In this document: positions 5,915 to 54,147 of the stretch, in pieces
Layout: every line of letters begins with the position of its first letter
How positions within the stretch are numbered: position 1 is the first letter of the stretch
Sequence record: KY555144.1
Strand: one strand, 5' to 3'
Length of the DNA: 64,000 bases
Program-made: the position numbers and the translations under genes
The notes under the pieces: model-generated
What the model saw: only the letters and a program-made list of their open reading frames with translations
What the model was told of the DNA's origin: nothing
Databases searched by the model: none

Positions 5915-5964
5915 CCCCTCAAAGCCCCCGGCCGCGCCGGGGGCGCCTCTCTGGAGCAAAGACC

Positions 5965-6276
5965 ATGCAAACCCGTCTCATCGTCGTGCGCGCGCCGACC
6001 GCCGCCGAACTCGCCGACCCGTCCAGCCGCGCGGGCGGCGCCGAAGTCGTCTTTGAGCGCGCCGACCGCGAGGGCCGCACGCGGCTTGTGTTCGCCTCCT
6101 ACTGCTACGGCTCATATCAGCAATGGGGCGAAACCGTCGACGTGCTCGGCGACAACGTCGAGGCCGCCACCCTCTGGGCGCGCGGCATGGCCCGCGTTCA
6201 TGACCTCATCCAAGAGGACCCGGACGACGACGAGGGCGACGACGCCCCGGCCGAAGACGACGACGGGGAGGCGTGA
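5965..6276 (+). CDS. Hypothetical protein, acidic C-terminus
   Basis: GGAG RBS. Confidence 0.75.
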   Translation: MQTRLIVVRAPTAAELADPSSRAGGAEVVFERADREGRTRLVFASYCYGSYQQWGETVDVLGDNVEAATLWARGMARVHDLIQEDPDDDEGDDAPAEDDDGEA

Positions 6277-6279
6277 GCC

Positions 6280-43400: not shown

Positions 43401-45856
43401 ACGCCTCGTCGGGCGACGACATCTCGCTCTATGCCGATATCGGCACGATCTACGTCCTCCAGGTCTATGGCCAGGGCTTCTGGATTTCCGAGGACAATTA
43501 CGTCCACGCCCTGCCCGATCCGCTGATCGTCACCACCACCGCGCCGGAGGGCTCGGCGCGCGGCGACGTCCATATCGTCCAGCCGCTGCCGGCCATCGTC
43601 GTCACCGCGCCGGTCCCGGTCGCGGCGGGTAACGCCCAGGCCGACGCCTATACGGGCGACTTCATCATCCTGGTCGCGCCGCCGGTTCCGCAAACGGAAC
43701 TGAACGCGAACGTCAACGTCTCGATGCCGCCGCCGATCGTCATCAACGGCAATGACGCGGAAGCCTCGCTTGACCTGAGCGTGCCGTTCAGCGACACGGC
43801 GGTGTTCGTCACCGGCCCCGAGGCCCTGGGCCTGGGCTTCCACGGCGGCGAGATGGGGCCGCCGATCGTGGTCACCCCGCCGCAGGGTGGCCCGGAGATT
43901 TCGGTCGAAATCTTCGTCGATCCCGGCACGATCCTGGTGGAGGCCCCGCGCTTCCACTATATCCCCCCGATCACGGTGTTCCCGCCCGAAGGCGTGGCCC
44001 TCGACGCCAAGTCGGCCGAGGCCTCCGGTGATCTCGGCACCATCACCATCGGGGTCCCGACCGGCGGCTACCAAGCCAACGTCGCCATCAACCTGCCGCT
44101 GCCGACGATCTTCGTCAACGTCCCGCAGGTCATGGTCTTCGCCTCGGTCGCCGTGTCGGGCGACATCGGGACGATCATCCTCACCCCGCCGGCCGCCACC
44201 CTGACTGCCGGCGCGGACGCGGCCTTCACCCTGCCCGGCCCGATCGTCGTCACCGCGCCCGAGGCGACGGCGACGGCGGGCACGGCGGCGGCGACCTCCG
44301 GCGCCCTGACCACGATCACCCTGACCCCGCCCGAGGGTTCGGTCTCGACCGGCGCGGCGGCGGCGACCTCGGGCGCGATCGGCACGATCCTCGTCTCGCC
44401 GTTCGACGGCAGCGTCTTCATTTCCTATCCGGGCAATGCGTCGGGCGCGATCGGCACGATCGTCGTCACCCCGCCGGTCGCGACCGTCTCCAACGGCCGC
44501 AACCTGTCGATCGCCCTGCCCGGCCCGATCATCGTCACCCCGCCTGCGGCCCAGCCTCAGGCTGGCGCGGCGATCACCGGCGACATCGGCACGATCGTCG
44601 TCACCAACCCGGACGGCCAGGGCACCGGCGACACCGTGCTGGCCTCGGGCGCGATCGGCACGATCTTCGTCACCACCCCGGACGGTGCGGCGACCGGGCG
44701 GGGCCTGGGCACGGGCGCGATCGGTACGATCGTCGTCACCCCGCCAGTAGCGTCCCTGACCACCGGCGCCAACAAGACCGTCGCCCTTCCCGGTCCGATC
44801 GTCGTCACCCCGCCGGTCGGCGTGGGTCGTGTCCCCGCCGTCGGCGCGGGCGATCTGGCGACGATCACCATCACCAGCACGCCCGAGGCCACCCTGTCGG
44901 TGGGCCAGGGCATCGACGGCCAGATCGGCACGATCACGGTCACGCCGCCCGAGGCGCTGCCGCAGGGCTCGGTGTTCGTCGACCCGACCGACGAAATGGT
45001 CGTGCAGGTCCTGCCTCCGCAGGCCATCCTCTTCCGCGAGGCCACGGTCATCGTCGGCTTCCCGACGGTCTATCTGGTCGCGCCCGAGGCGATCACCTAT
45101 TCGCTGGCCGAATTCGCCTCGATCACCCTGCTGCCGCCGGACGCCTATGTCGACGTCCCGCTCCCGCTGGGCAAGAACCGCATCCGCTACCGCCGCAACA
45201 CCACCGCCGGCCGCGCCCCGGCCAGCCTGCGCCCCAACGAGATCGCCCTGAACGAGACCGATGGCCTGCTGTTCACGCGTGACGGCGCCGGCGCGGTCAA
45301 GGCCACCCCGCTGGGCTTCCTGACCGGCGCGGGCGTGCCGCCGCCGATCACCGACAACGGCAAGGTCCTGTCGGGCGGCCTGTCCTGGGAGACGCCGAAC
45401 ACCCGCTACCTCCTGCCGGTCCGCAACGCGCCGCCGGCCGGCGCGCGCATCGCCCTGGGCGAGGGCGTGGTGGGCGTCACGACCTTCACCCCGACGGTCG
45501 ACGTCACCTACACGCGCCCGTTCTTCGTGGCCAAGACCATCGACATCCAGGCGCTGTCGGTGGATGTGGTGGGCGCCGCCGCCGCTACGGCCGAACTGGG
45601 CCTGATCGGCTGGTCCCTGTCGGGCGTGCCCGGCGCGACCCTGGCGCTCGGTACGGTCAGCACCGCGACCACCGGCGTCAAGACGGCGACCGGCACGGCC
45701 GTGACCTTGACGCCGGGCTGGTACGCCTCCACCTTCAAGGTCACCGGCGCGGCGGGGGCGTCGTTCCGGGCTCCGACCGCACCGACGGCGATCGCGCCGG
45801 ACCTCACCGTGACGCCGGGCGCCCCGGCGCCGGTCATGGCAGACCTGGAGGCCTAA
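37466..45856 (+). CDS. Giant fibre/filament protein (Gly-rich domains, LamG-like lectin, beta-repeat shaft)
   Basis: 2796 aa; repeated WGGGGGG modules; FTIEAW...WAHYAVVR...IDEFR LamG-like segment; GDIGTIxVTxP repeats. Confidence 0.88.
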   Translation: MVDIVAGTPVSVSYSGASTTYVAAETGQMTVHLWGGAGAGGYYSNGSGAANKYGGAGGYALVSFLVKEGDVLTLEVGQGGQAATGSGTTATAGGNGGWPDGGYGGKSTNAYIGFGGGGGSTRLYRNGELVAVAGGGGGATGLYNGGNGGGVLGLASADANSGAGGTQSVGGTAGSGTLAIQTGLGFQGGRGGATASTAHAYAGGGGGGGLYGGASNGGGSLAGGSGGGGSGYLNQNLLYSGRLQAARADTSGVPFDVAGIRPAGVAEGGTGPTVASTGWGSITPGGDGFAYLALTSVASAPSFPTSGTTTLAYSGARQTYTVTQLSTVDIEMWGAGGGGGFYTTGGASPRYGGAGGYTKFTKVLFPGDIVEIEVGQGGLAPDGVGGNIGGAGGWPNGGDAGRPSANVNAYMGGGGGSTNIYVNGRLLGVASGGGGGTGLLNGGNGGGKWGLADTNGASGTAATWARDNSTSTGLARGFLLRGGHGSPNETRDIAHANAGAGGGGGYWGGGGARGSVGAGGGGCGYINGDLTWDRSYQWGTQGTGQPYTGGAYTAGVGVGGTCGTSAGTTTNGGDGQIVLTVTAASTATLPTDKNALTYSGAVQHYVAPSAGVIDLKMWGSGGGSGVRTSGTPGRGGGGGCTLVPFVPIKAGDIITFAVGQGGRGAVDANSISPGGWPNGGYSGPSASAGGGGASLFYVNGELVAVAGSGAGAGISNGGFPGGSASCDPGYVNFTSHGGTQTTAGWCPTRVLEGTTYGTYMLAGDGQIDGVAPDNVNVNTGGGGGGGYYGGGGNATNSSRYWGGNGGSGYINPKYTGTITGASSALAANNTDPDYVAGVGVAGVGSTTYANPVTNGGDGRIVFTYEIPPNLVESLTTAVPVDGTVKTYIVGADGNLVLDLWGGGGGAATMLAGGGSERGGGGGYTGGTIPVTAGQVIRFYNARGGGGGVYTSGTATALVGTGGPSGWPDGGPGGYYAGAASPAQNGILAGAGGGSSRVYVDDQLILLAGGGGGGGDGGTTRTPGGGGGLTGGNSDAPSGQNQGGTQIRGGVNTSRSTDTVAAGGLFRGGSGFATGGAANVSNATAGGGGGGGLFGGAGSGGSVIFIGGAGGSAFIFDGLIVSKSDPYRAEVIAQMTFETGGVIDDGRLREILPVDTVPTAVTTTPKYGAYCGNYPGSGHTTMTVPAFGLQNFTIEAWFSPNSLASGVLFAYGNSGVGGFSLHYNTNTLTLRHNGDAATDLTWADTARVANVWAHYAVVRDMAGTRVYKDGRLVLTYVNSIGTSFTATQLTLANYTGASGNSTRFAGRIDEFRATLGACRYVKPFTPSSFAATSPYIPTLTSTTQAPQGSSGTAANNGSAKYIAGRGVGAQTRFTAGTAPSGGDGQISYFLGTSTVTAAGPIGTVIVSGLTDAAAGAFYPLPPVGSVVVEPYTGARVNYEVTEAVGARIKVEMWGGGGGGSSANNTLTTNGGGGGGYTVIELDLVQGDRITVQTPSGGAGGVNAGSGSAINLGGYPDGGDGYRPAFTALNCGGGGSARLWAQGNLAAVAGGGGGAAYGGGGYDFPGGAGGGNLGGPGAYDGVNATFPNGGGTQIAGGVGTANGVNGTSLQGGHGGTVSGIANNGCGGGGGYYGGGGGGAYKSGGGGSGYVNTGLPGYRTGSTTGGSGNLPAGMSSPNYVSGIGVGSNGKGGAFTNGGNGRIVISVITPTPGNASGSIGTVNVSGLDNFGLLIGVPTGPLDTIDVVVPVGVSGQPGFAEGPLTTIGVGPAETIPQAQAVVIVPINDQTSILIEPPINAPLEVPGDGIGELDTIVVSPFDSTQTAGVAFDAADLPTITLVAPEADAVEIPPVLTSGDIGTVIVTATEATTQVIPPVETSGDIGTITVVTVTGEASWNNNVSASGDIGTIIVTVPDVAAVGDDLAEGLIGTITVIAPEGVALQDANVAADIGTISVYPIEGGQPGDAVGDIPYIQVVTPGATVNASSGDDISLYADIGTIYVLQVYGQGFWISEDNYVHALPDPLIVTTTAPEGSARGDVHIVQPLPAIVVTAPVPVAAGNAQADAYTGDFIILVAPPVPQTELNANVNVSMPPPIVINGNDAEASLDLSVPFSDTAVFVTGPEALGLGFHGGEMGPPIVVTPPQGGPEISVEIFVDPGTILVEAPRFHYIPPITVFPPEGVALDAKSAEASGDLGTITIGVPTGGYQANVAINLPLPTIFVNVPQVMVFASVAVSGDIGTIILTPPAATLTAGADAAFTLPGPIVVTAPEATATAGTAAATSGALTTITLTPPEGSVSTGAAAATSGAIGTILVSPFDGSVFISYPGNASGAIGTIVVTPPVATVSNGRNLSIALPGPIIVTPPAAQPQAGAAITGDIGTIVVTNPDGQGTGDTVLASGAIGTIFVTTPDGAATGRGLGTGAIGTIVVTPPVASLTTGANKTVALPGPIVVTPPVGVGRVPAVGAGDLATITITSTPEATLSVGQGIDGQIGTITVTPPEALPQGSVFVDPTDEMVVQVLPPQAILFREATVIVGFPTVYLVAPEAITYSLAEFASITLLPPDAYVDVPLPLGKNRIRYRRNTTAGRAPASLRPNEIALNETDGLLFTRDGAGAVKATPLGFLTGAGVPPPITDNGKVLSGGLSWETPNTRYLLPVRNAPPAGARIALGEGVVGVTTFTPTVDVTYTRPFFVAKTIDIQALSVDVVGAAAATAELGLIGWSLSGVPGATLALGTVSTATTGVKTATGTAVTLTPGWYASTFKVTGAAGASFRAPTAPTAIAPDLTVTPGAPAPVMADLEA

Positions 45857-45860
45857 GACC

Positions 45861-46529
45861 ATGCCGACCAACATCAACATGGCGCCGGACACCACCCTGC
45901 TGGCCGACATCCTCCTCAATGGCGGGGCTGGCGCGCCAGCGGACCTGGAGGATGGCGAACTCTATATCGACGAGGCGGGGCGCAAGCTCTATGTTGAGAC
46001 CGTGGTCGGCGTCCAGGCCATTCCGCTCGACGTCGGCTATGTCCCGCGCCGTCCCAGCGGCACGCCGCTCGATTACGTGGTCAACAAGACCGAGACCGGG
46101 GCCGAGTGGGGACCGCTGGAAGGCGGGGCCGGCGGCTCGCCGTTCGACGCGGCCGAGTTCCGCATCCCCGGCTTGGCTCCCACGGGCCTGGACACGGTTG
46201 CCATGCCCGGCGCCTCCGGAGGCCTGGGCCTGTTCGAGATGCCGATCCAGGACGTGCTCCTGAGCATCCGCGTACACGCCTCGGCGGGCGCGGGGTCCGT
46301 GACCGTGGCGCTCTATCCGTACAACGGCTCGCTCGGCTCGCTGATCTTCACCCAGACCCTGACCTTCGCCGCCCCCGAGGCCCAGGTCGTGCCCGTGTCC
46401 CAGCCCCTGACGCCGGGCGTCTACGCCTGGGTCTGGACCGGGACCGACGGCCTGACCCTCGACGCGATCAAGGGCTCGCTCCCGTGGGCGACGCGCGAGC
46501 AAACCCATCCCGTGGCGATGAAGTTCTAA
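45861..46529 (+). CDS. Fibre-associated protein
   Basis: N-terminal APADLEDGELYID attachment-type motif. Confidence 0.75.
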   Translation: MPTNINMAPDTTLLADILLNGGAGAPADLEDGELYIDEAGRKLYVETVVGVQAIPLDVGYVPRRPSGTPLDYVVNKTETGAEWGPLEGGAGGSPFDAAEFRIPGLAPTGLDTVAMPGASGGLGLFEMPIQDVLLSIRVHASAGAGSVTVALYPYNGSLGSLIFTQTLTFAAPEAQVVPVSQPLTPGVYAWVWTGTDGLTLDAIKGSLPWATREQTHPVAMKF

Positions 46530-46531
46530 CG

Positions 46532-47308
46532 ATGGCGATCCAGAACCCCCATTCCACCACGCCCGGCGCCATGCCGCACCTGACGCCCGGCGAGATCGGC
46601 GTCAACAAGGCCGACGACATCCTCTGGTTCCGCTCGCAGGGGCGCCGCGTGCCGATCATCCTGAGCGACCTTGACCGCGCCCCGCCGGCGGACGGCTATG
46701 TCGGCGCGCCCCTGACCCTGGTGGACGGCGCGCCGGCCTGGAACGTCAAGCTCTTGCCGTCCTCGATCGTCTCCGGCGCGGTCAAGGTCGATCTCCCGCC
46801 CGCCGCCGGGCTACACGCCGTGCCGAGCGTCCTGCTCCAGGGCCTGGGGGCCGATCGCGCCCTGGCGTCCAATGATCTGGACCTCACCCCCTTCTATGTC
46901 CGCTCCGACTCCATCACCCTGACCCATCTGGCCTTCAGCGTGCGCTCGGCGGGCGCGCCGGCCATGCGCGTGGGGATCGTCGATGCCTTCGGCGTCGTCC
47001 AGGCCGACATCCTGGTCGCCGCGCCGGTCGTGGGGGCCAATGTCGTGGCTCTCTCGCCGGTCCTGACCCTCCAGCGCGGCGTCTACCGCACCATCCTGGC
47101 GACGACCGGGGCGGTGACCGTGGGGATCGCCACGGGCGCGCGCATGGAGCAGGGCTGGGACATCATCGCCGACGCGCCGTCGTTCATCCGGGGCTACAGC
47201 GGCAGCAAGAACACCGGCGGCGGTATCGGGAGCCTACCGGCGCTGACCCCGCGCCGCGACCCCGCGCCGGGCCAGGATCACGCCGTCCTCCTGCGCTGGA
47301 CGGCGTGA
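46532..47308 (+). CDS. Fibre-associated protein
   Basis: N-terminal STTPGAMPHLTPGEIGVN motif; C-domain resembles end of the giant fibre. Confidence 0.75.
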   Translation: MAIQNPHSTTPGAMPHLTPGEIGVNKADDILWFRSQGRRVPIILSDLDRAPPADGYVGAPLTLVDGAPAWNVKLLPSSIVSGAVKVDLPPAAGLHAVPSVLLQGLGADRALASNDLDLTPFYVRSDSITLTHLAFSVRSAGAPAMRVGIVDAFGVVQADILVAAPVVGANVVALSPVLTLQRGVYRTILATTGAVTVGIATGARMEQGWDIIADAPSFIRGYSGSKNTGGGIGSLPALTPRRDPAPGQDHAVLLRWTA

Positions 47309-47340
47309 ATCTTGACACTCGGTCGAAATACGGTTAACCT
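47302..47340 (+). promoter_or_regulatory. GGCGTGAATC-TTGACA-N15-GTTAACCT promoter
   Basis: Motif variant. Confidence 0.7.
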
Positions 47341-47370
47341 GCGCGCTCATCTGGAGTTTCGAGCGCCATC

Positions 47371-47637
47371 ATGGCCGAGCTTGTCCGCATCTATCACCCC
47401 GAGACGAACGAGCCGTTCGACGTGATTCCGTCGACCGCTGAACGTCTGCGCCTGGGTCAAGGTCTGGACGGTCTGGTGTGGCTCTCGCAGCCCTTCTCCC
47501 GCGCCGCTGCCGAAGAGCCGGCGCCGGAAGCCCCCAAGGGGCGAGGTCGTAAGCGCGTCGCCGCGCCCGTCTCGGACGAAGCCGAAGACGATGGCTGGCG
47601 TGACGCGCCGACCGAGGACGCTTCCGAAGCCGCGTAA
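47371..47637 (+). CDS. Acidic protein with KGRGRKR motif
   Basis: GGAG RBS; resembles the 33233 gene. Confidence 0.75.
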   Translation: MAELVRIYHPETNEPFDVIPSTAERLRLGQGLDGLVWLSQPFSRAAAEEPAPEAPKGRGRKRVAAPVSDEAEDDGWRDAPTEDASEAA

Positions 47638-47681
47638 GGCGCTTCCCCGTCCACTCTGCTGAAATTCGGTCTCAGTCCCAT

Positions 47682-47757
47682 GTCGGTCTAGCTCATGGGG
47701 TAGAGCGGCGGTCTCCAAAACCGCGCGTGGCAGGTTCGAGTCCTGCGACCGGCGCCA
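47682..47757 (+). tRNA. tRNA-Trp(CCA)
   Basis: Cloverleaf; loop CT-CCA-AA; encoded CCA. Confidence 0.95.
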
Positions 47758-47762
47758 TTTCC

Positions 47763-47837
47763 GCGTCCATCGTATATGGGTTATTGCTTCGCGTTGCCAA
47801 CGCGACGAACCGGGTTCGAGTCCCGGTGGACGCTCCA
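47763..47837 (+). tRNA. tRNA-Gly(GCC)
   Basis: Loop TT-GCC-AA; U73; CCA. Confidence 0.95.
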
Positions 47838-47843
47838 ATCCAG

Positions 47844-47917
47844 GCGGATATAGCTCAAAGGGAGAGCTACTGCCTTCCAAGCAGAAGATGCGGGTTCGAG
47901 CCCCGCTATCCGCTCCA
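47844..47917 (+). tRNA. tRNA-Gly(TCC)
   Basis: Loop CT-TCC-AA; U73; CCA. Confidence 0.95.
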
Positions 47918-47938
47918 AAATTTTCTTCCACGACAAGC

Positions 47939-47967
47939 TTGACAGCCGTCGAGATTTGTGAGAGCCT
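47939..47967 (+). promoter_or_regulatory. Promoter of Glu/Asp tRNA unit
   Basis: TTGACA-N15-GAGAGCCT; twin of the 48735 promoter. Confidence 0.75.
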
Positions 47968-47976
47968 TCAACCATT

Positions 47977-48039
47977 ATGACGCACCTCCTGACCCGTTAC
48001 GAACGCGAGGCCACCGGCCTCGATACCACCACCGCCTAA
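47977..48039 (+). CDS. Putative leader peptide MTHLLTRYEREATGLDTTTA
   Basis: Near-leaderless ORF between promoter and tRNA-Glu/Asp; alternative hairpins. Confidence 0.5.
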   Translation: MTHLLTRYEREATGLDTTTA

Positions 48040-48073
48040 AAGCGGTTCTGGTAACCGAGGCCTTTTGTCATGT

Positions 48074-48151
48074 GGCCCGGTCGTCTAGCGGTTTGCAGGA
48101 TTCGTGACTTTCAATCACGAGAGCGGAGTTCGAGTCTCCGTCGGGCCTCCA
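48074..48151 (+). tRNA. tRNA-Glu(TTC)
   Basis: Loop CT-TTC-AA; CCA. Confidence 0.92.
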
Positions 48152-48174
48152 CCCCCAAAGCCTCCTCTGAGCTT

Positions 48175-48249
48175 GGTGCGTTCGTATATCGGTCAATACT
48201 CCGGATTGTCGATCCGGCAAGAGGGGTTCGATTCCCCTACGCACCGCCA
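48175..48249 (+). tRNA. tRNA-Asp(GTC)
   Basis: Loop TT-GTC-GA; G73; CCA. Confidence 0.95.
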
Positions 48250-48259
48250 GGGCTTTTCC

Positions 48260-48418
48260 ATGCCGCTCCAGTCGGGTTCGAGCGACGCCGTCGTCTCGCA
48301 CAACATCGCCAAGCTGATCGACGAGGGCTACTCCAGGGAGCAGGCCGTGGCGATCGCCCTCTCCCAGGCGCGCAAGCCGCGCCGTCCGAAGGTCTCGCGC
48401 GGCTCGCGCCGGCGCTGA
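48260..48418 (+). CDS. Small basic phage protein
   Basis: MPL..G.S...NI..L..EGY...QAVAIAL pattern; Arg-rich tail. Confidence 0.75.
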
Positions 48419-48489
48419 CCTCGCCTCGCTAAAGCACCCCCAGGTTCCCGGCCTCGTCGTGAGGCCGCCTGCGGTCGCGCGAGGCTTCC

Positions 48490-48714
48490 ATGACCTTTCT
48501 TGATCTTCGTTCGCAGTCGAGCGCCGTGCTCCTGCGCCATGTGTCTTCCCGATCCCCGATGGCGGAAGCGGCTCGCACCGAGTTGCTGACCCGAGGCCTC
48601 GTTCCGCTCCTCACGCGGCACAACGGCTGGCGCCTCGCCCCGAGCGAGCCCTTTCCGCAGCATCTCATCCCGCGCCCCGATCCGCTCGCGAGGTTCACGT
48701 GGCGGGCGGGATGA
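48490..48714 (+). CDS. Hypothetical protein
   Basis: GAGG RBS. Confidence 0.55.
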   Translation: MTFLDLRSQSSAVLLRHVSSRSPMAEAARTELLTRGLVPLLTRHNGWRLAPSEPFPQHLIPRPDPLARFTWRAG

Positions 48715-48734
48715 AGATTTTTCTCACGACGTGC

Positions 48735-48763
48735 TTGACATTCGTTTGAAGTTGTGAGAGCCT
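48735..48763 (+). promoter_or_regulatory. Promoter of Pro/Thr/Lys/Leu/His/Ala/Ser tRNA operon
   Basis: TTGACA-N15-GAGAGCCT. Confidence 0.8.
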
Positions 48764-48857
48764 ACCCAACGTCACGGATCACGACACTCCTCGGAGTGCA
48801 AAAGCGCGATCCTTCGTTATTCCCTGGACGCCAGCGGGCGTCCGTTCGAGAGCCATC

Positions 48858-48995
48858 ATGTTCGCCTTGTCGCATTACAGCCTGAGCACGAAAGCCGCCT
48901 CCCCGGCGTCGCTTTCGCTTGCCCTGCTGGCGACGGCCACGAAGCCCTCGACCAAGCCGACCACCTCGGCCTCGCACTCGACGGATCACCTCTAG
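48858..48995 (+). CDS. Putative attenuator leader peptide (45 aa; 41 residues are S/A/T/L/K/P/H)
   Basis: MFALSHYSLSTKAASPASLSLALLATATKPSTKPTTSASHSTDHL; composition equals downstream tRNA set. Confidence 0.8.
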   Translation: MFALSHYSLSTKAASPASLSLALLATATKPSTKPTTSASHSTDHL

Positions 48996-49071
48996 GGTAT
49001 CTCGTCTCGGGTGCGGGCCTTGGAGCCGCACCCGCTACCAACATCCTGTTGACCTAGCGCAAGGCGGCTCC
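48968..49071 (+). promoter_or_regulatory. Alternative helices of attenuator (A:B, B:C, C:D)
   Basis: 48968-81 pairs with 49007-19; 49008-16 with 49026-34; 49022-29 with 49064-71. Confidence 0.75.
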
Positions 49072-49097
49072 CAGCAAGGAGACCGCCTTTTCTTTTT
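49061..49097 (+). terminator. Attenuator intrinsic terminator
   Basis: AAGGCGGCTCC-CAGCAA-GGAG(A)CCGCCTT then TTCTTTTT, 13 nt before first tRNA. Confidence 0.85.
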
Positions 49098-49109
49098 CGC
49101 GTTGATCAT

Positions 49110-49185
49110 CGGGGTGTAGCTCAGTCGGTAGAGCGCTCGGTTCGGGACCGAGAGGCCGTGGGTTCGAGTCCCGCCACCCAGACCA
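49110..49185 (+). tRNA. tRNA-Pro(CGG)
   Basis: Loop TT-CGG-GA; C1-G72, A73. Confidence 0.93.
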
Positions 49186-49192
49186 ACGCCAT

Positions 49193-49267
49193 CGGGATGT
49201 AGCTCAGCGGTAGAGCGCGCGGCTGGGGGCCGCGAGGCCGCAGGTTCGAGACCTGCCACCCCGACCA
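49193..49267 (+). tRNA. tRNA-Pro(GGG)
   Basis: Loop CT-GGG-GG; C1-G72, A73. Confidence 0.92.
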
Positions 49268-49272
49268 ACAAT

Positions 49273-49345
49273 GCTGCTGCGCCTGGATCGGCGCCGGCCC
49301 CTTGGTATGGGGAAGTAGAAGGTTCAATTCCTTCCGGCAGCACCA
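49273..49345 (+). tRNA. tRNA-Thr(GGT)
   Basis: CCCC/GGGG stem, loop TT-GGT-AT; G1-C72, C2-G71. Confidence 0.75.
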
Positions 49346-49350
49346 ACAAT

Positions 49351-49420
49351 GCCGATGCCTCTAGGAGGACACGTCTTTCGTAATGACGTCAGGTGGGTGC
49401 GATCCCCACTTTCGGCTCCA
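49351..49420 (+). tRNA. tRNA-Thr(CGT), non-canonical
   Basis: Loop TT-CGT-AA with T.T closing pair; T-loop TGCGATC; short D-arm. Confidence 0.6.
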
Positions 49421-49455
49421 TCAAGATGATCAAGGAGAGATCAGACGAAACAAAT

Positions 49456-49542
49456 GGATGTGTCACCTCAGTGGCGAGAGGACCGGGCTCTTAATCCGGC
49501 AGCGAAAGCTCATCGTGGGTTCGAGTCCCACCACATCCTCCA
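49456..49542 (+). tRNA. tRNA-Lys(CTT) with long variable arm
   Basis: Loop CT-CTT-AA; 87 nt; U73. Confidence 0.85.
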
Positions 49543-49547
49543 ATAAT

Positions 49548-49637
49548 GCACGAGTGACCCGAGCGGCGAAGGGCGTCGACTTTTAATCGACTGGGCGTCC
49601 AGCCTCACCGAGGGTTCGAGTCCCTCCTCGTGCTCCA
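49548..49637 (+). tRNA. tRNA-Lys(TTT) with long variable arm
   Basis: Loop CT-TTT-AA; 90 nt; U73. Confidence 0.85.
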
Positions 49638-49643
49638 AGATGT

Positions 49644-49729
49644 GCGAAAGTGGCGGAACAAGGTAGACGCACCGGTCTCAGGTACCGGCGGCTTCGGTCA
49701 TGAGGGTTCGAGTCCCTCCTTTCGTACCA
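49644..49729 (+). tRNA. tRNA-Leu(CAG)
   Basis: Class II; loop CT-CAG-GT; A73. Confidence 0.95.
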
Positions 49730-49736
49730 ACGACAT

Positions 49737-49821
49737 GCCGGTCTGGCGGAAATGGCAGACGCAGTGGCTTCAAGTCCCACCGCCTTCGGGCGTCCCGGTT
49801 CGATGCCGGGGACCGGCACCA
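49737..49821 (+). tRNA. tRNA-Leu(CAA)
   Basis: Class II; loop TT-CAA-GT; A73. Confidence 0.9.
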
Positions 49822-49827
49822 CCATGA

Positions 49828-49915
49828 TGCGAAGTGGCGGAATTTGGTAGACGCACCGGCATGAGAGGCCGGCGCCCTTCGGGGCGTGAGGGTTCGAGTC
49901 CCTTCTTCGCGACCA
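49828..49915 (+). tRNA. tRNA-Leu(GAG)
   Basis: Class II; loop AT-GAG-AG; A73. Confidence 0.92.
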
Positions 49916-49928
49916 AAGACGAGATCAT

Positions 49929-50000
49929 GCCGGCCGGCGCAGGCGCGCGGGGGAGGTTGTGTCCCTCCTTGGCTCAGTTCGATACTGAGGGTCGGTTCCA
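49929..50000 (+). tRNA. tRNA-His(GTG)-like, non-canonical
   Basis: GCCGGCC/GGTCGGT acceptor (G1.U72); GGAGG/CCTCC stem with TT-GTG-TC loop; TTCGATA T-loop; CCA. Confidence 0.6.
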
Positions 50001-50005
50001 GTTAC

Positions 50006-50076
50006 GGGGTATGCGCAGGGCGCAGGCATCCTTTGCAAGGAAGTCGGGGTGGGTTCGAGTCCCACATACTCCACCA
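50006..50076 (+). tRNA. tRNA-Ala(TGC)
   Basis: G3.U70; loop TT-TGC-AA; A73. Confidence 0.88.
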
Positions 50077-50080
50077 ACAC

Positions 50081-50168
50081 GGTAGGTTGGCTGAGAGGCC
50101 GAAGGCGCCCGTTTCGAAAACGGGAGAACTGCAAGGTTCCGTGGGTTCGAATCCCACACCTACCTCCA
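50081..50168 (+). tRNA. tRNA-Ser(CGA)
   Basis: Class II; loop TT-CGA-AA. Confidence 0.93.
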
Positions 50169-50172
50169 ACAT

Positions 50173-50260
50173 GGATGTATGGCTGAGAGGCCGAAGGCGC
50201 CCGCTTGGAAAGCGGGTGAACCGCAAGGTTCCGTAGGTTCGAATCCTACTACATCCGCCA
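50173..50260 (+). tRNA. tRNA-Ser(GGA)
   Basis: Class II; loop TT-GGA-AA; G73. Confidence 0.95.
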
Positions 50261-50264
50261 ACAG

Positions 50265-50351
50265 GGTAGGTGGTTCCGGCCTGGGGCCGGACCCGGTTGC
50301 TAACCGGCCGGAGCCGCAAGGCTTGGGGTTCGATTCCTCCTCCTACCGCCA
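50265..50351 (+). tRNA. tRNA-Ser(GCT)
   Basis: Class II; loop TT-GCT-AA; G73. Confidence 0.88.
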
Positions 50352-50359
50352 CTTCGATG

Positions 50360-50616
50360 TTGACACCCGCGACGCGGCCTGTCATACGTCACGACAGAGC
50401 GAACACCCCCCGGCCGGGTTTGTTGTCATACCGGGTCGTCACGCCCCGTCGGGGCTCTAGTAGCTCTTCGTGTGGAGTTTTCCGCCTCCCTCCCAGACAA
50501 GGAGGCGGACCCAACCAACATCGCGATCTCCCGTGATCGTCGGCGACGGGCGCCGTCAGAGACCTTTGCCTGCGCGGCTCCGCTGCGGCCTCGGTCTCGT
50601 CCCGACCAAATTTTTT
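50360..50616 (+). ncRNA. Candidate structured ncRNA with own promoter
   Basis: TTGACA-N15-GTCATACG; multiple hairpins; no credible ORF; ends in T-run. Confidence 0.4.
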
Positions 50617-50627
50617 CGTCGTGGTGC

Positions 50628-50656
50628 TTGACACTGCGAAACTGTTCTGCTAGGGT
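50628..50656 (+). promoter_or_regulatory. Promoter of Tyr/Phe/Val/Ile/Gln/Asn/Arg tRNA operon
   Basis: TTGACA-N15-GCTAGGGT. Confidence 0.85.
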
Positions 50657-50663
50657 TCACGTC

Positions 50664-50762
50664 ATGAGCAAGACCTATCGTCAATTTGTGCGCCAGATTC
50701 AGGTCGTCCGGAATATCCGGGCGGGCCGCTCGCGCATGGCTGACGAAGGGTTCAGGGACTAG
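50664..50762 (+). CDS. Putative attenuator leader peptide (32 aa)
   Basis: MSKT-YRQFVRQIQVVRNIR-AGRSRMADEGFRD; 15 consecutive residues drawn only from downstream tRNA specificities. Confidence 0.82.
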   Translation: MSKTYRQFVRQIQVVRNIRAGRSRMADEGFRD

Positions 50763-50792
50763 GTCCCGCACCACGCTCAACCAGCTTTCGAG

Positions 50793-50830
50793 AGGCCCGC
50801 CTGGAAACCCCAGGCGGGCCTTTTTCTTTT
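50793..50830 (+). terminator. Attenuator intrinsic terminator
   Basis: AGGCCCGCCTGG-AAACC-CCAGGCGGGCCT then TTTTCTTTT; 5' arm can instead pair with 50720-50732. Confidence 0.9.
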
Positions 50831-50865
50831 CCCCCTTTCGATCACGGAGATCGCCAAACAGACAC

Positions 50866-50950
50866 GGATGCTTAAAGCTGGAGGGCTCCAGCCGGGGACT
50901 GTAAATCCCCTCTCTTCGGAGGAGTGGTTCGATCCCACAAGCATCCACCA
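50866..50950 (+). tRNA. tRNA-Tyr(GTA)
   Basis: Class II; loop CT-GTA-AA; A73. Confidence 0.9.
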
Positions 50951-50955
50951 ACCAC

Positions 50956-51031
50956 GGACTCGTAGCTCAGCAGGTAGAGCGCCGGCTTGAAACCCCGGAG
51001 GTCGGAGGTTCGATTCCTCCCGTTTCCACCA
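50956..51031 (+). tRNA. tRNA-Phe(GAA)
   Basis: Loop TT-GAA-AC. Confidence 0.92.
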
Positions 51032-51036
51032 ACAAC

Positions 51037-51112
51037 GCCCGATGAGCCAGATGGGAAGGCGCCGCCGTGACATGGCGGGATTGAGAAGGTTCGATTCCTT
51101 CATCAGGCACCA
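51037..51112 (+). tRNA. tRNA-Val(GAC)
   Basis: Loop GT-GAC-AT; A73. Confidence 0.9.
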
Positions 51113-51114
51113 AT

Positions 51115-51190
51115 GCAAGTGTAGCTCAGTCGGTAGAGCAGCGGACCGATAATCCGCCCGTCCCTGGTTCGAGTCCAGGCATTTGCACCA
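51115..51190 (+). tRNA. tRNA-Ile(GAT), C33 variant
   Basis: Loop CC-GAT-AA; A73. Confidence 0.85.
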
Positions 51191-51197
51191 ATTCTGA

Positions 51198-51272
51198 TGT
51201 GGCATAGCTCAGGGGTAGAGCGCGCGCTTGATAAGCGTGAGGTCGGGGGTTCGAAGCCCTCTGCCACTACCA
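51198..51272 (+). tRNA. tRNA-Ile(GAT)
   Basis: Loop TT-GAT-AA; A73. Confidence 0.9.
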
Positions 51273-51305
51273 GTTTCCAGGCCGGCGGAGATGCGCCGGA
51301 CCTGA

Positions 51306-51381
51306 TGGCGTTTAGCATAGTGGGAGTGCAGGGGTGTCACATACCTCGATCGAACTGGTTCGATTCCAGTAACGCCAACCA
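51306..51381 (+). tRNA. tRNA-Val(CAC)
   Basis: Loop GT-CAC-AT; A73. Confidence 0.88.
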
Positions 51382-51386
51382 AACGT

Positions 51387-51460
51387 TGAGGGTTCGTCTA
51401 ATGGTAGGACGGCTGGGTCTGGTCCAGCTAATCTAGGTTCGAGTCCTAGCCCCTCATCCA
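51387..51460 (+). tRNA. tRNA-Gln(CTG)
   Basis: Loop GT-CTG-GT. Confidence 0.9.
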
Positions 51461-51467
51461 AGTTTGT

Positions 51468-51541
51468 TCTCGGGTGGTCTAATGGTAAGACATCTGGTTT
51501 TGGTCCAGAGGATTGGGGTTCGATTCCTTGGCCGAGAACCA
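51468..51541 (+). tRNA. tRNA-Gln(TTG)
   Basis: Loop TT-TTG-GT. Confidence 0.9.
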
Positions 51542-51556
51542 ACTATTTGAGTTTAT

Positions 51557-51631
51557 TCCAGTCAATGCACAAGGTGTGCAGCGGCACTGTTAATGCCTGT
51601 GAGCCCGGTTCGATTCCGGGGTCTGGAGCCA
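51557..51631 (+). tRNA. tRNA-Asn(GTT)
   Basis: Loop CT-GTT-AA; G73. Confidence 0.9.
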
Positions 51632-51657
51632 ACACGTCGGCCTCGGCCGGCACATGC

Positions 51658-51740
51658 GCCCTGGTAACCGAGGGGGATTACGAATCCCTTAGTCGTAGCA
51701 GGAGTTGAAAAGGGTGGTTCGAATCCACTCCAGGGTGCCA
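51658..51740 (+). tRNA. tRNA-Arg(ACG)-like, lacking a normal D-arm
   Basis: Acceptor, anticodon (TT-ACG-AA) and T arms intact; about 8 nt in place of D-arm, about 23-nt variable region. Confidence 0.6.
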
Positions 51741-51747
51741 AATTCAT

Positions 51748-51830
51748 AGCGCGCAGGCCGAGCAGGATCATCGTCAGGCGTCGCCCTCCGAAGGCGAAGA
51801 GGCCCGGTTCGAGTCCGGGGCGCGCTGCCA
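51748..51830 (+). tRNA. tRNA-Arg(CCG) with enlarged D-loop
   Basis: Loop CT-CCG-AA; D-loop about 17 nt. Confidence 0.8.
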
Positions 51831-51833
51831 TCC

Positions 51834-51911
51834 GCGCGGGTAGCTCAATGGACCCAGAGCAGCCGTCTTCTACACGGTGGGTTGGGGGTTCGAATCCCTC
51901 CCCGTGCGCCA
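51834..51911 (+). tRNA. tRNA-Arg(TCT)
   Basis: Loop CT-TCT-AC; CCA. Confidence 0.92.
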
Positions 51912-51914
51912 AAC

Positions 51915-52232
51915 TTGACGGGCGATGCCGAATCGCTCAGCTTCCTGATCGGCTCTCGATGGGCCGCCACTGCACGCCACCGACGCCCTCCCGGTACAAG
52001 GAGGGGCGCACGTCGGCGACGTTCCAACCCAGTTCCGGACGATCTTCGAACGCGGCCTGCCGTGGAGGGGTGCTGGAAGGGCCGGGGTTGTGGGAACCGT
52101 CGAGCATCTCCTACATCCGGATTGGGCTTCCTGGGGGCTCCTCCGGTCAACCAGGGCCTGACCCGACCCCGGAGATGCGCCGCCTACGATCACCCAGGAC
52201 CGTCCTGGCGGTGGAAAGGGTCTGAAATTTTT
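51915..52232 (+). ncRNA. Candidate ~310-nt structured ncRNA after last tRNA
   Basis: Long-range stems such as GCATCTCC/GGAGATGC; no codon-biased ORF. Confidence 0.4.
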
Positions 52233-52246
52233 CTGGCGCTGATGTG

Positions 52247-52378
52247 TTGACACTCCTCGGAGGTTCGTCTAAAACCAGCAGCGTCAGAGCGGCGTTGGAC
52301 CACGAGGTCCGCCGCGAGCTTCTGCGTTGTCGTCAGGAACGGCCCGTCAGCAATCCCGCTGGCGGGTCGTTTCGTTTT
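52247..52378 (+). ncRNA. Candidate sRNA (promoter, hairpin, terminator)
   Basis: TTGACA-N15-TCTAAAAC; hairpin 52281-52327; terminator 52341-52378. Confidence 0.5.
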
Positions 52379-52414
52379 GGGCGCGATGCGACGTTCAGTC
52401 CAACCATGGGTAGT

Positions 52415-52453
52415 GTCATGAATCTTGACTTTCGGCGCTTATTCCGGTAGCTT
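52415..52453 (+). promoter_or_regulatory. GTCATGAATC-TTGACT-N15-GGTAGCTT promoter
   Basis: Motif variant. Confidence 0.7.
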
Positions 52454-52498
52454 TCCCGACATCAGCAAACGCTCACAAGTCGGGGACCGAGAGCCGTC

Positions 52499-52915
52499 AT
52501 GTCGCAAGACCACCACGGCTCGTCCTCGGGCCAAGAACGCATCTACCAGAAACTGGATGAGCTTGGCTCCATGCACGCGCGCACCCGTGAAGATATTGCC
52601 CGCATCCAGGAGATGATGCGAGCGGTCGGTTCGTCGCAGGAGCGAATCGAAAAGCGTCAGGACCATTTCGAGCGCGAAATCTGGCGCGAGATGGAAGATC
52701 GCGCCGCGCGCACGAGCGCCCAACTCGACGAAATCAAGAGCCACACCAACCTGCGCATCGAGGAGATCGAGGCCAAGGTCGACACGATCCGCGAGGAGCG
52801 GATCGCCGAAAAGGCCCAGTGGCGCGGCCCCGAGAAGGCCATCGCCGCCCTGGTCGCCGTCGCCGGGGCCATCGCCGCCTTCGCCACCATCCTCACTTTC
52901 CTGAAGGGACACTAG
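52499..52915 (+). CDS. Coiled-coil protein with C-terminal TM anchor
   Basis: Heptad-rich body; IAALVAVAGAIAAFATILTFL tail (XhlA/holin-like topology). Confidence 0.75.
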   Translation: MSQDHHGSSSGQERIYQKLDELGSMHARTREDIARIQEMMRAVGSSQERIEKRQDHFEREIWREMEDRAARTSAQLDEIKSHTNLRIEEIEAKVDTIREERIAEKAQWRGPEKAIAALVAVAGAIAAFATILTFLKGH

Positions 52916-52950
52916 GACTTATAGTCAAGCTTGGGTGCCTGCGGCCAGAA

Positions 52951-52966
52951 GTCGCGCTTCTTGACA
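52951..52966 (+). promoter_or_regulatory. GTCGCGCTTC-TTGACA promoter (degenerate, no GANTC)
   Basis: Motif variant. Confidence 0.5.
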
Positions 52967-53022
52967 CCCGATCTGGGCCGGCATAACCATAGGGCCATCA
53001 TTCCTGGGTGGAGTTTTCCCTA

Positions 53023-53229
53023 ATGGCTGTCGCGCTTACTGTCGTCTCGGTTGAGACCGAATCTACCATCCAAGGTGTTGACCCCGACGCGGCGCATGTC
53101 CGCCTGATCGAGGTCCTGCATACCGCCGCAGAAGCGGGTCTTGGGGAAATGACGTTGGAAGTCAAAGCGGAGATCGCGGCGCTGCTCCAGCAGGCGTCCG
53201 TGGAACTCTCCCACTGCCGGCCGGTGTAG
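53023..53229 (+). CDS. Hypothetical protein
   Basis: GGAG RBS. Confidence 0.6.
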   Translation: MAVALTVVSVETESTIQGVDPDAAHVRLIEVLHTAAEAGLGEMTLEVKAEIAALLQQASVELSHCRPV

Positions 53230-53263
53230 GGGTCCCGTAAATCGCCATCCCAGAGGGAGCGAC

Positions 53264-54130
53264 GTGTCCGAGTCTGCTGAGTTCAACCCGCTCGACCAAA
53301 ATCAGTTCCCTCCTCGCCTCACCAAGGCTGCTGCGCGACAGGCGCGGCGCCAGGAGCGCAGCCAGAAAAAGGACCCCACGGCCAACAAGCCGAACTACAA
53401 GGCGCTCGAAGCCAAGACCGAACGCCAACGGCGCTATATCCAGGCCCTCAAGGCCGGTGAAAGCGTCATCGCCATTGGTGGGGCCGGCACGGGGAAGACC
53501 TATATCCCGTCCCGGCTCTTCGCCAAGAAGCTGATCGAAGCGAAGATCGAACGCCTGATCATCGCCCGCGTCACCGCCTCGCGCCCCAAGCACGCCCTGG
53601 GCTTCCTGCCCGGCAAGCTGGAAGCCAAACTCGCCCCGTGGCTCGTCCCGGTGATCGAGGGCGTCAAGGCCGAGATGAACGCCCAGACCTACACGCAGTT
53701 GCAGGAGGCCGGCAAGATCGAGTTCGCCTCGTTCGAGCATATGCGGGGCCGGACCTTCGCCGAGTGCTGCGTCCTCCTCGACGAGGCGCAGAACGCCGAC
53801 TACAAGGACCTGAAGATGGTCCTGACCCGCTGGGGCGAGAACGCCCAATACGCGGTCACCGGCGACGTCGACCAGATCGACGTCGACGATTCGGGCCTGG
53901 AGACGGTCGTCGACATCGTCGAGACCCACGACATCCCGATCCACGTGATCGAGTTCACCGACGAGGACGTGGTCCGCTCGCCCATGGCCAAGGCCTGGGT
54001 CAAGGCGTTCTCCGCCCACGAGGGCAAGGACGGTCGGACGCGGCGCTTCCATCGCCCCACTGTCAGGAATCTTGACGTCCTGCCGGCTTTTATCGATAAT
54101 GGCCGAGTCACGAAACCCGTGGCGTCGTGA
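53264..54130 (+). CDS. phoH: PhoH-family ATPase
   Basis: GGAGTGKT, LGFLPG, MRGRTF, LDEAQN, TGDVDQID, DVVRS. Confidence 0.95.
   Translation: MSESAEFNPLDQNQFPPRLTKAAARQARRQERSQKKDPTANKPNYKALEAKTERQRRYIQALKAGESVIAIGGAGTGKTYIPSRLFAKKLIEAKIERLIIARVTASRPKHALGFLPGKLEAKLAPWLVPVIEGVKAEMNAQTYTQLQEAGKIEFASFEHMRGRTFAECCVLLDEAQNADYKDLKMVLTRWGENAQYAVTGDVDQIDVDDSGLETVVDIVETHDIPIHVIEFTDEDVVRSPMAKAWVKAFSAHEGKDGRTRRFHRPTVRNLDVLPAFIDNGRVTKPVAS
54062..54077 (+). promoter_or_regulatory. GTCAGGAATC-TTGACG promoter (neck operon)
   Basis: Motif variant inside phoH 3' end. Confidence 0.6.
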
Positions 54131-54131
54131 C
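54107..54131. promoter_or_regulatory. GTCA-N17-TGAC palindromic site
   Basis: GTCACGA-N11-TCGTGAC. Confidence 0.45.
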
Positions 54132-54147
54132 AAAGACGTAGCGCACC

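Follow-up and report, generated by a model that had tools for sequence, protein, structure and literature searches.

Why would a phage set short open reading frames (ORFs) and transcription terminators between its promoters and its tRNA genes? The question is raised by the tRNA region of Caulobacter phage Ccr5 (KY555144.1; phiCbK-like, Shapirovirus, Dolichocephalovirinae), which occupies positions 47682-51911 of the window, the 64-kb stretch of DNA analyzed here. Control of tRNA genes is normally attributed to their promoters, via growth rate and the stringent response, and phage tRNA arrays are usually treated as constitutively co-expressed accessories. Our modelling points to an arrangement that we regard as likely, namely, that ribosome-mediated (leader-peptide) transcription attenuators gate the phage tRNA arrays and provide negative feedback from decoding. 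Each unit would comprise its own sigma-70-like promoter, a short ORF composed of codons decoded by the downstream tRNAs, an RNA switch, an intrinsic terminator, and then the tRNAs. We refer to leader 1 with its switch and array 2 as unit 2, to leader 2 with its switch and array 3 as unit 3, and to leader 3 (47977-48039), located before tRNA-Glu and tRNA-Asp, as unit 1b. The promoter-like sites, leaders, RNA segments, and tRNA arrays described below all lie on the + strand. An original prediction, made from the sequence alone, had described unit 2 as a five-segment attenuator; its observation is confirmed, and its interpretation is supported in silico and strengthened by a covarying second unit and comparative data. 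The genomes compared were the close relatives phiCbK, Magneto, Swift, Karma, and Ccr10; Rogue, BL10, and BL57 (Poindextervirus); Colossus and PW (Colossusvirus); SC, BL9, RB23, and BL47 (Bertelyvirus); and the Brevundimonas phages Kikimora, Domovoi, Bambus, and Papperlapapp.

Leader 1 is best considered together with the genes that it precedes. Array 2 (49110-50351) holds 14 tRNA-like genes, in the order Pro (CGG, GGG), Thr (GGT, CGT), Lys (CTT, TTT), Leu (CAG, CAA, GAG), His (GTG), Ala (TGC), and Ser (CGA, GGA, GCT). The 45-codon leader 1 (48858-48995) translates as MFALSHYSLSTKAASPASLSLALLATATKPSTKPTTSASHSTDHL, and a recount of its residues gives S10 A8 T7 L7 K3 P3 H3, so that 41 of the 45 belong to the seven specificities of this array, as had been claimed. 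Among 60,939 45-residue windows from the six frames of the whole window, it ranks first for this seven-amino-acid set (binomial P = 5e-11, with a phage background of 0.44). All 14 anticodons of array 2 have a readable codon in leader 1, and each also has one within codons 4 to 34, which we take as the sensing window. Altogether, array 2 serves 35 of 44 leader 1 codons. The original prediction had noted that GCC has no matching tRNA in the array, which holds, and the unserved codons are GCC (six times), TTC, TAC, and GAT. A Shine-Dalgarno-like GAGAG (48848-48852), conserved across relatives, lies 5 nt 5' of the ATG.

The leader 1 ORF is annotated in Ccr5 as the hypothetical protein gp081 and has its own PHROG family (12742, its sole match, with function unassigned there). 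One might therefore suppose that gp081 and the other short ORFs are simply small functional proteins, that the hairpins are ordinary terminators or processing sites, and that the match to the array is a high-GC coincidence, the more so as Ser/Ala/Thr/Pro-rich stretches are common in six-frame translations and the runners-up to leader 1 reach 40 of 45. We consider this extremely improbable. The runner-up windows are out-of-frame translations rich in Ser, Pro, Thr, Ala, and Arg and lack the Lys, His, and Leu diversity of leader 1. A terminator between a promoter and the only genes it can serve is, moreover, sensible only if it is conditional. The coincidence would also be needed twice, beside the right arrays, and would have to survive the sequence turnover and track the differences in Trp and Lys-UUU between lineages that are described below.

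How might translation of leader 1 be communicated to RNA polymerase? The original prediction had read five segments by eye, and RNAfold returns each of the four proposed pairings at the positions given for them. Segment A (48968-48981, codons 37 to 42 of leader 1) pairs with segment B (49007-49019) in a helix of 13 bp with one bulge, extended toward the stop codon, with a free energy (ΔG) of -31.0 including the extension. Segment B can pair alternatively with segment C (49022-49034; 49009-49017 with 49026-49034), and nucleotides 49022-49029 of C (GGAGCCGC) can pair with 49064-49071 in segment D to form the antiterminator. Within the C:D loop lies a spacer hairpin (49033-49059) that was absent from the original prediction. 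Finally, segments D (49061-49071) and E (49078-49089) form the hairpin of the intrinsic terminator (49061-49097; hairpin 49061-49089, ΔG of -18.5), with a U-tract at 49088-49097 (TTTTCTTTTT). The orthologous site is annotated as a terminator in phiCbK, CcrSwift, and Karma; a simple terminator scan overlooked it in Ccr5 because of a bulged A.

To model the switch, a ribosome was represented by a mask extending 15 nt 5' and 10 nt 3' from the A-site codon, the mask was moved codon by codon, and the probability of the terminator helix was computed. This bears out the proposed logic: the probability is at most 0.2 without a ribosome or with the A site at codons 4 to 34, where A:B and the C:D antiterminator prevail, and at least 0.85 from codon 35 to the stop codon, where B:C and the terminator form. 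The switch score, i.e., the late minus the early terminator probability, is 0.91, and none of 100 dinucleotide-preserving shuffles of all sequence 5' of the terminator reaches it (0.00 +/- 0.08; maximum, 0.39). In Kikimora, Domovoi, and Bambus, the terminator probability likewise jumps some 10 codons ahead of the stop codon, with helices of other sequence, and the score in Domovoi is 0.57 (shuffle maximum, 0.46; again 0 of 100 shuffles reach it). Under fast reading, then, a ribosome at codon 35 or beyond would cover segment A, B:C and D:E would form, and RNA polymerase would terminate at 49097, upstream of the array. Slow decoding at any one of the 14 steps within codons 4 to 34, owing to scarcity of the matching charged tRNA, would leave A free to form A:B; C:D could then form, the terminator would be blocked, and all 14 tRNAs would be transcribed. 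Without a ribosome, read-through would be expected as well.

The barriers to rearrangement, estimated with findpath, fit a kinetic switch, and the scheme appears coherent in these models. Conversion of A:B to B:C meets a barrier of 15.9 kcal/mol, whereas the reverse conversion meets one of only 3.6 kcal/mol. Since B:C would thus yield readily to A:B, termination should need a ribosome that still covers A. The C:D helix and the terminator are of equal energy and are separated by a barrier of 12.2 kcal/mol, so that C:D, once formed, should outlast the transit of the polymerase.

Is unit 2 an isolated case? Array 3 (50866-51911) consists of 12 tRNA-like genes (Tyr GTA, Phe GAA, Val GAC, Ile GAT twice, Val CAC, Gln CTG, Gln TTG, Asn GTT, Arg ACG, Arg CCG, and Arg TCT) and is preceded by a second leader that is unannotated in Ccr5. 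This leader 2 (50664-50762; 32 codons, MSKTYRQFVRQIQVVRNIRAGRSRMADEGFRD) contains a core, YRQFVRQIQVVRNIR, in which codons 5 to 19 all specify Tyr, Arg, Gln, Phe, Val, Ile, or Asn (15 of 15), exactly the seven specificities of array 3. With 15 of 16 residues in the array 3 set, its stretch YRQFVRQIQVVRNIRA outranks all others among about 90,000 windows of 16 residues, and leader 2 covers all 11 distinct anticodons of array 3. For each array, therefore, the top window for its amino-acid set lies directly 5' of that array, which is hard to ascribe to chance.

The RNA of unit 3 resembles a trp-type attenuator. Segments 1 (about 50672-50712) and 2 (about 50716-50752) lie within the ORF, and codons 4 to 16 form a self-hairpin with codons 18 to 30 (ΔG of -47.7). 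Segment 3 (50776-50804) is followed by the 3' arm of a terminator (50790-50824) that was found by the terminator scan and leads into a U-tract, the whole extending over 50776-50832. The 3' half of leader 2 is also complementary to the stretch 5' of and including the terminator 5' arm, with a ΔG of up to -40. A truncated-transcript ribosome scan with a barrier estimate was used for this unit in place of the full-length equilibrium scan. In this analysis, a ribosome stalled at codons 8 to 14 gives the antiterminator when the transcript is truncated before segment 4, the preformed hairpin of the ORF presents a barrier of about 24 kcal/mol, and termination results in the absence of a ribosome. The 5' half of the leader, with its Tyr/Arg/Gln/Phe/Val/Ile/Asn run, would pair with the 3' half, as in the trp leader, and a ribosome stalled on the run would release the 3' half to pair with the terminator 5' arm.

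Comparative data argue for these helices. Codons 17 to 22 of leader 2 are complementary to the terminator 5' arm in 14 of 14 phages, and they change together with both terminator arms; for example, Ccr5 has CCGGGCGGGCC / GGCCCGCCTGG / CCAGGCGGGCC where SC has TCGGACGGGCC / GGCCCGTCCGA / TCGGACGGGCC. In an alignment of 12 of these 14 phages, 97.7% of cells are paired for helix 2:3, with compensatory changes in 3 of 11 pairs. The corresponding values are 99.2% and 4 of 11 pairs for helix 3:4, and 92.9% and 2 of 7 pairs for helix 1:2. Slid pairings, used as a control, match in 24 to 61% of cells. The intrinsic terminator of unit 3 is present in all lineages.

If the leaders sense decoding, selection should be visible in what they encode. 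Homologues of leader 1 are found as ORFs of 39 to 48 codons in 15 phages from five Dolichocephalovirinae lineages, and tblastn finds leader 2 in 41 phage records, all Dolichocephalovirinae. Nearly every aligned column of 12 leader 1 sequences is variable, and 110 of 132 residue states at the variable columns fall within the seven-residue set. In the sensing part of leader 1, between 24 of 28 and 34 of 34 residues are in the set, with 100% in the Brevundimonas phages, and a 9-nt in-frame insertion in Ccr10 adds only residues of the set. Judging from these sequences, selection is on leader composition, not on sequence. Anticodon coverage by leader 1 is complete in PW (15 of 15), Kikimora (16 of 16), Domovoi (15 of 15), and SC (12 of 12), and that by leader 2 in other phages ranges from 8 of 8 to 10 of 11. 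The rare TTG (2% of Leu codons) is retained in leader 1 of every lineage. AAA (4% of Lys codons) occurs in leader 1 only of lineages with a Lys-UUU tRNA and is absent where only Lys-CUU is encoded, and TGG occurs only in the leaders of Bertelyvirus, whose array 2 ends with tRNA-Trp; this tracking of AAA and TGG represents few independent events.

Between some of these phages, leader 1 is extremely conserved at the nucleotide level. Between Ccr5 and Rogue, there are no synonymous differences at 39 identical-residue codons, compared with 12% in gp078 and gp080 and 32% in gp076. Such extreme conservation, synonymous sites included, could be explained by RNA structure, and both ORFs are partly base-paired in the models. 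Conceivably, then, the region might specify a structured untranslated RNA (a processing signal, a small RNA, or a riboswitch-like element), with the open frame and its composition as by-products of base composition and RNA structure. Several features make this very unlikely in our view. Start, stop, and frame have survived in five lineages through in-frame indels and an almost total turnover of sequence, and the replacements remain in the amino-acid set of the array. The two leaders are of opposite base composition, yet each is matched to its own array. Shine-Dalgarno-like elements or a leaderless start geometry are conserved. Finally, tRNA is the only Rfam family that matches the region: a cmscan search of 46500-54500 at E <= 1 returned no T-box (RF00230) but only tRNA-clan and weak chance matches.

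From the architecture, the composition and codon match, the alternative folds, the covariation in unit 3, and the conservation, we infer that the leaders are translated, that transcription and translation are coupled, that stalling leads to read-through, and what the physiological trigger may be. The net effect of attenuation would be to raise the phage tRNA supply only when decoding of the corresponding codons is limiting; such a shortage could come late in infection or after loss of host tRNAs.

A third leader-type unit, for which the case is weaker, may lie further upstream. In unit 1b (47939-48073), a promoter-like TTGACA (47939-47944) is followed by the 20-codon leader 3 ORF (47977-48039; MTHLLTRYEREATGLDTTTA) and by a long hairpin (48016-48062) with TTTT after it. 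The unit directly precedes tRNA-Glu and tRNA-Asp (48074-48249 in Ccr5), an arrangement found in all lineages. The ORF has 20 or 21 codons throughout, and an ERE...D motif (GAA/GAG plus GAT) is present in all lineages but Bertelyvirus, which has a single Glu codon (RE...D). The long hairpin is likewise found in all lineages, with differing arm sequences and pairing that is kept, as judged by eye; a U-tract follows it in Ccr5 and Ccr10 alone. As a side observation, Rogue and BL10 carry an insertion of about 290 nt between tRNA-Gly-TCC and the leader 3 promoter that is absent from Ccr5 (positions 2330-2773 of stretches L002 and L003), so that the gap between the two is 442 nt there versus 156 nt in Ccr5.

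Taken one step further, these units would mean that the Dolichocephalovirinae control their own tRNA pool by supply and demand, with three modules that split 16 of the 18 encoded specificities among them and each transcribe their block only upon slowing at its codons. We would put this broader proposal at slightly better than even. The Trp and Gly tRNAs sit behind gp078 and not behind a leader: a leader before the Trp-Gly-Gly tRNAs was sought and rejected, as the preceding gene is the ordinary 88-residue gp078 (PHROG 10343) and no terminator is present.

Several points weigh against attenuation as outlined here. The folds all come from thermodynamic models in which the ribosome footprint is assumed, and the full-length equilibrium model of unit 3 gives the terminator at every ribosome position. 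The switch in unit 3 is therefore deduced on kinetic grounds, as is expected for this class of attenuators. In unit 2, segments A, B, C, and D are invariant within Shapirovirus plus Poindextervirus (segment C in all five phages) and within the Brevundimonas phages, and they are not alignable between genera. Because of this invariance, A:B and C:D receive no support from covariation, and the compensatory changes in unit 2 are confined, among five phages, to one hairpin in the 5' untranslated region (UTR) and the spacer hairpin, which shows an A-U to U-A change in Rogue and BL10. On the other hand, the invariance of the switch beyond the ORF means strong constraint, as far as the sequences tell. 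The codon match is also imperfect. Six of the eight Ala codons in leader 1 are GCC, which Ala-UGC should not read, and leader 1 of SC has four ACC codons and a TCA codon although this phage lacks Thr-GGU and Ser-UGA tRNAs. Given the peptides, full anticodon coverage is only modestly unlikely (P of about 0.06 and 0.03 for leaders 1 and 2, respectively). Furthermore, classical attenuators sense charged tRNA, so that amino-acid starvation would also induce the arrays, a situation in which extra tRNA would be no help. Several of the array tRNAs are non-canonical and putative in function. The default without a ribosome differs between the units, with read-through in unit 2 and termination in unit 3. 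Lastly, leader 1 is kept in Colossusvirus (PW and Colossus) and Bertelyvirus (SC, BL9, and RB23), where neither a U-tract terminator nor an in-silico switch was found.

The differing defaults bear on the question of what is sensed. The attenuators might be real and yet gauge general translation capacity (ribosome availability, host shut-off, or a translation-targeting defence), the composition match being secondary. Unit 2 is predicted to read through without a ribosome, so that any block of initiation would induce it, and with 7 amino acids and 14 isoacceptors its sensor is very broad. This alternative nevertheless seems distinctly unlikely to us. For such a purpose, there would be no need of three leaders whose amino-acid sets do not overlap and match the respective arrays, nor of the retention of the rare TTG and AAA codons, and unit 3 is predicted to terminate without a ribosome.

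The lineages that lack a canonical terminator after leader 1 bear in turn on the output. In Colossusvirus and Bertelyvirus, another output may follow leader 1, and Rho dependence is possible there. More generally, the leaders might be translated and regulatory with a different output or direction, either through Rho-dependent termination, with the C-rich leader 1 RNA as a ribosome-masked Rho loading site, or through processing or stability of the tRNA precursor; either way, efficient translation and not stalling would favour tRNA expression. In Rho-dependent attenuation of the tna/mgtA type, the loading site is C-rich, G-poor, and unstructured, and there is no intrinsic terminator; Ccr5 does have intrinsic terminators. 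Leader 1 is C-rich in all lineages (C, 0.38 to 0.42 versus G, 0.25 to 0.27; C/G ratio, 1.4 to 1.7). In addition, the leader 3 hairpin is without a U-tract in most lineages and includes the last codons of the ORF, such that a ribosome there would block it. Even so, we consider this explanation unlikely as a general one. The C-richness of leader 1 follows from the NCN codons that encode Ser, Pro, Thr, and Ala, whereas leader 2 is G-rich (C/G ratio, 0.6 to 0.8) with an equal composition match. Canonical terminators with covarying antiterminators are found for unit 3 in all lineages, and canonical terminators with antiterminators for unit 2 in two deep lineages, the leader 1 terminator being present in Shapirovirus, Poindextervirus, and the Brevundimonas phages.

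Genes for tRNAs were sought with ARAGORN in default and relaxed modes, with the Rfam search described above, and by eye. The count of 14 in array 2, made in the original prediction, stands: 10 are called by default ARAGORN, 3 by relaxed ARAGORN (Thr-GGT, 49273-49345; His-GTG, about 49925-50005; and Ser-GCT, 50265-50351), and 1, Thr-CGT (about 49351-49422), was read by eye, with an orthologue called by ARAGORN in Rogue and BL10. These last four are non-canonical. In array 3, Tyr, Asn, and Arg-ACG were read by eye in Ccr5, and orthologues of these three and of Arg-CCG are annotated in Kikimora, PW, and SC. In all, default ARAGORN and Rfam missed or miscalled eight non-canonical tRNA-like genes (49273-49422, 49925-50005, 50265-50351, 50866-50952, and 51557-51831), namely, Thr-GGT, Thr-CGT, His-GTG, Ser-GCT, Tyr-GTA, Asn-GTT (called Ile-AAT), Arg-ACG (called Arg-CCT), and Arg-CCG. 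Thr and Tyr tRNAs have been stated to be absent from these phages (PMC3556154); contrary to this, candidates for both are present in Ccr5. A separate peculiarity concerns the two Lys tRNAs of array 2 (49456-49637; CTT, 87 nt, and TTT, 90 nt), which have the long variable arms of a class II shape and a U as discriminator base and are nearest to phage Ser tRNAs (55 to 59% identity). In bacteria, the class II shape is normally limited to Leu, Ser, and Tyr tRNAs.

How do these units compare with known attenuators? The his attenuator (hisL) of Salmonella and E. coli has six segments (A to F) and 7 His codons, controls biosynthetic genes, and terminates without translation. Unit 2 is like it in that regulatory codons abound in a short ORF, that more than four segments exclude one another in a chain leading to an intrinsic terminator, and that ribosome position decides the outcome; it is unlike it in having five segments, seven amino acids with 14 isoacceptors, a tRNA cargo, and predicted read-through without translation. 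The trp attenuator (trpL) has segments 1 to 4 and two Trp codons and terminates by default without a ribosome. Unit 3 shares its 1:2/2:3/3:4 logic, the location of the sensing codons in segment 1, and the default termination. It differs in its 15-codon sensing run for seven amino acids, in an ORF that continues 33 nt past the core of segment 2, in an mRNA that is probably leaderless, and in a cargo of 12 tRNA genes.

Multivalent attenuators are known for thr (Thr and Ile) and for ilvGMEDA and ilvBN (Leu, Val, and Ile), which respond to two or three amino acids of linked pathways. The Ccr5 leaders would similarly integrate several charged tRNAs in one leader, but their seven amino acids are set by the downstream tRNA genes and not by a metabolic pathway. 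The pheST attenuator of E. coli (pheM) controls the synthetase for one amino acid and responds to the cognate charged tRNA. It resembles the Ccr5 units as attenuation of a component of the translation apparatus, whereas in Ccr5 the cargo is the tRNA genes themselves. The T-box binds uncharged tRNA directly, via a specifier codon and the T-box sequence, and without translation; it shares with the Ccr5 elements the coupling of terminator read-through to tRNA status, but the latter contain conserved ORFs. The usual cargo of attenuators consists of genes for biosynthesis, transport, or synthetases, in contrast to the 14 and 12 tRNA genes found here. To our knowledge, no attenuator has a tRNA cargo, responds to seven amino acids through one leader (known cases respond to one to three), or senses the product of its own genes. 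In the full-text literature, we found no description of attenuator-controlled tRNA genes; as most subscription journals lie outside this coverage, the absence is no proof. Phage-encoded tRNA arrays are otherwise viewed as making up for lost host tRNAs or for a mismatch in codon usage. For the arrays of the phiCbK family, the benefit proposed is that codons frequent in the phage can be decoded with greater capacity (PMC3556154). The same paper lists phiCbK tRNAs together with predicted terminators, to which no interpretation is attached, and the strings "leader" and "attenuat" have 0 occurrences in it.

If attenuation by the leaders is correct, these would be the first tRNA genes under the control of an attenuator that senses what they themselves encode. 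The phage could then respond, codon class by codon class, to depletion of host tRNAs, whether from host shut-off or from anticodon-nuclease defences. The speed of decoding would thereby feed back directly on the supply of tRNA, and classical attenuation would be widened to seven amino acids for a single leader. Three features of these phages would be accounted for as well: the division of the arrays into blocks of fixed amino-acid membership, the terminators between promoters and tRNAs, and the conservation, at these sites, of mini-ORFs that are unannotated or "hypothetical". One could then test, in the tractable laboratory host C. crescentus (NA1000 or CB15), whether phage tRNAs are a response to depletion of host tRNAs. 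The element could also be of use as a small natural sensor of the capacity to decode multiple codons.

The promoter-like sites deserve separate comment. That of unit 2 (48735-48763) has a -35 element TTGACA (48735-48740), a 17-nt spacer, and a -10-like GAGCCT (48758-48763), and transcription would be expected to start near 48770. The site is kept in Ccr10, BL57, Rogue, and BL10, and the same TTGACA-N17-GAGCCT layout occurs 5' of leader 3. Unit 3 has a corresponding site at 50625-50656, with TTGACA at 50628-50633 and a -10-like TAGGGT at 50651-50656. As the ATG of leader 2 lies only 7 nt 3' of this -10-like hexamer, with matching spacing in Kikimora, PW, and SC, its mRNA is probably leaderless, judging from this geometry. 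In leaders 2 and 3, the ATG follows the -10-like hexamer by 7 to 9 nt in all lineages. In the whole window, a -35-like motif (A/T)TCTTGACA occurs 18 times (4.3 expected), almost always on the + strand, and probably represents the main phage promoter class for host polymerase. Examples lie at 19378, 22321, 25399, 30390, 33137, 47309, 48732, 50625, 52958, and 56088.

The 5' UTR of leader 1 contains two hairpins (48776-48844), at 48776-48812 and 48825-48844, the second just 5' of the GAGAG (RNAfold ΔG of -29.1; 95 to 100% paired in five phages). The second shows one compensatory change from A-U to C-G, and the first shows G-U wobble changes. The first hairpin is followed by a U-rich run (48776-48822 in all), and the CcrPW version (positions 5700-5770 of stretch L005) reads CCGAG..CTCGG followed by TTCTCTTTTT. 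This combination looks like a terminator sited before the leader 1 ORF.

Between array 2 and the leader 2 promoter lies a non-coding stretch of about 270 nt (50352-50620) that is conserved in Rogue and BL10 and contains its own TTGACA (50363-50368) and a hairpin (about 50481-50509); it might encode a small RNA or act in processing. Located 5' of the tRNA region is a giant ORF of 2796 codons (37466-45856), whose relatives are annotated as lectin-like or PE-PGRS-like.

Beyond the Dolichocephalovirinae, searches gave little. An IMG/VR scan with the unit 3 terminator pattern returned the known isolates and 10 unrelated terminators without tRNAs and nothing new, and a metagenome scan with gp080 found no relative. 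DNA-pattern scans with leader 2 gave only chance matches of high-GC bacterial origin, in one metagenome contig and 14 genome contigs, mostly actinobacterial. Sphingobium phage Lacusarx has no tRNAs within the 68 kb examined. Roseobacter phage DSS3P8 has tRNAs in a different arrangement. Here, a leaderless-looking 20-codon ORF, MSHKAANESEQRAGRTGNNA (positions 5964-6026 of stretch L028), with one GAA, one GAG, and no Asp codon, lies about 200 nt 5' of a pair of Glu tRNAs (TTC and CTC, 6230-6415) and may be a distant counterpart of leader 3.

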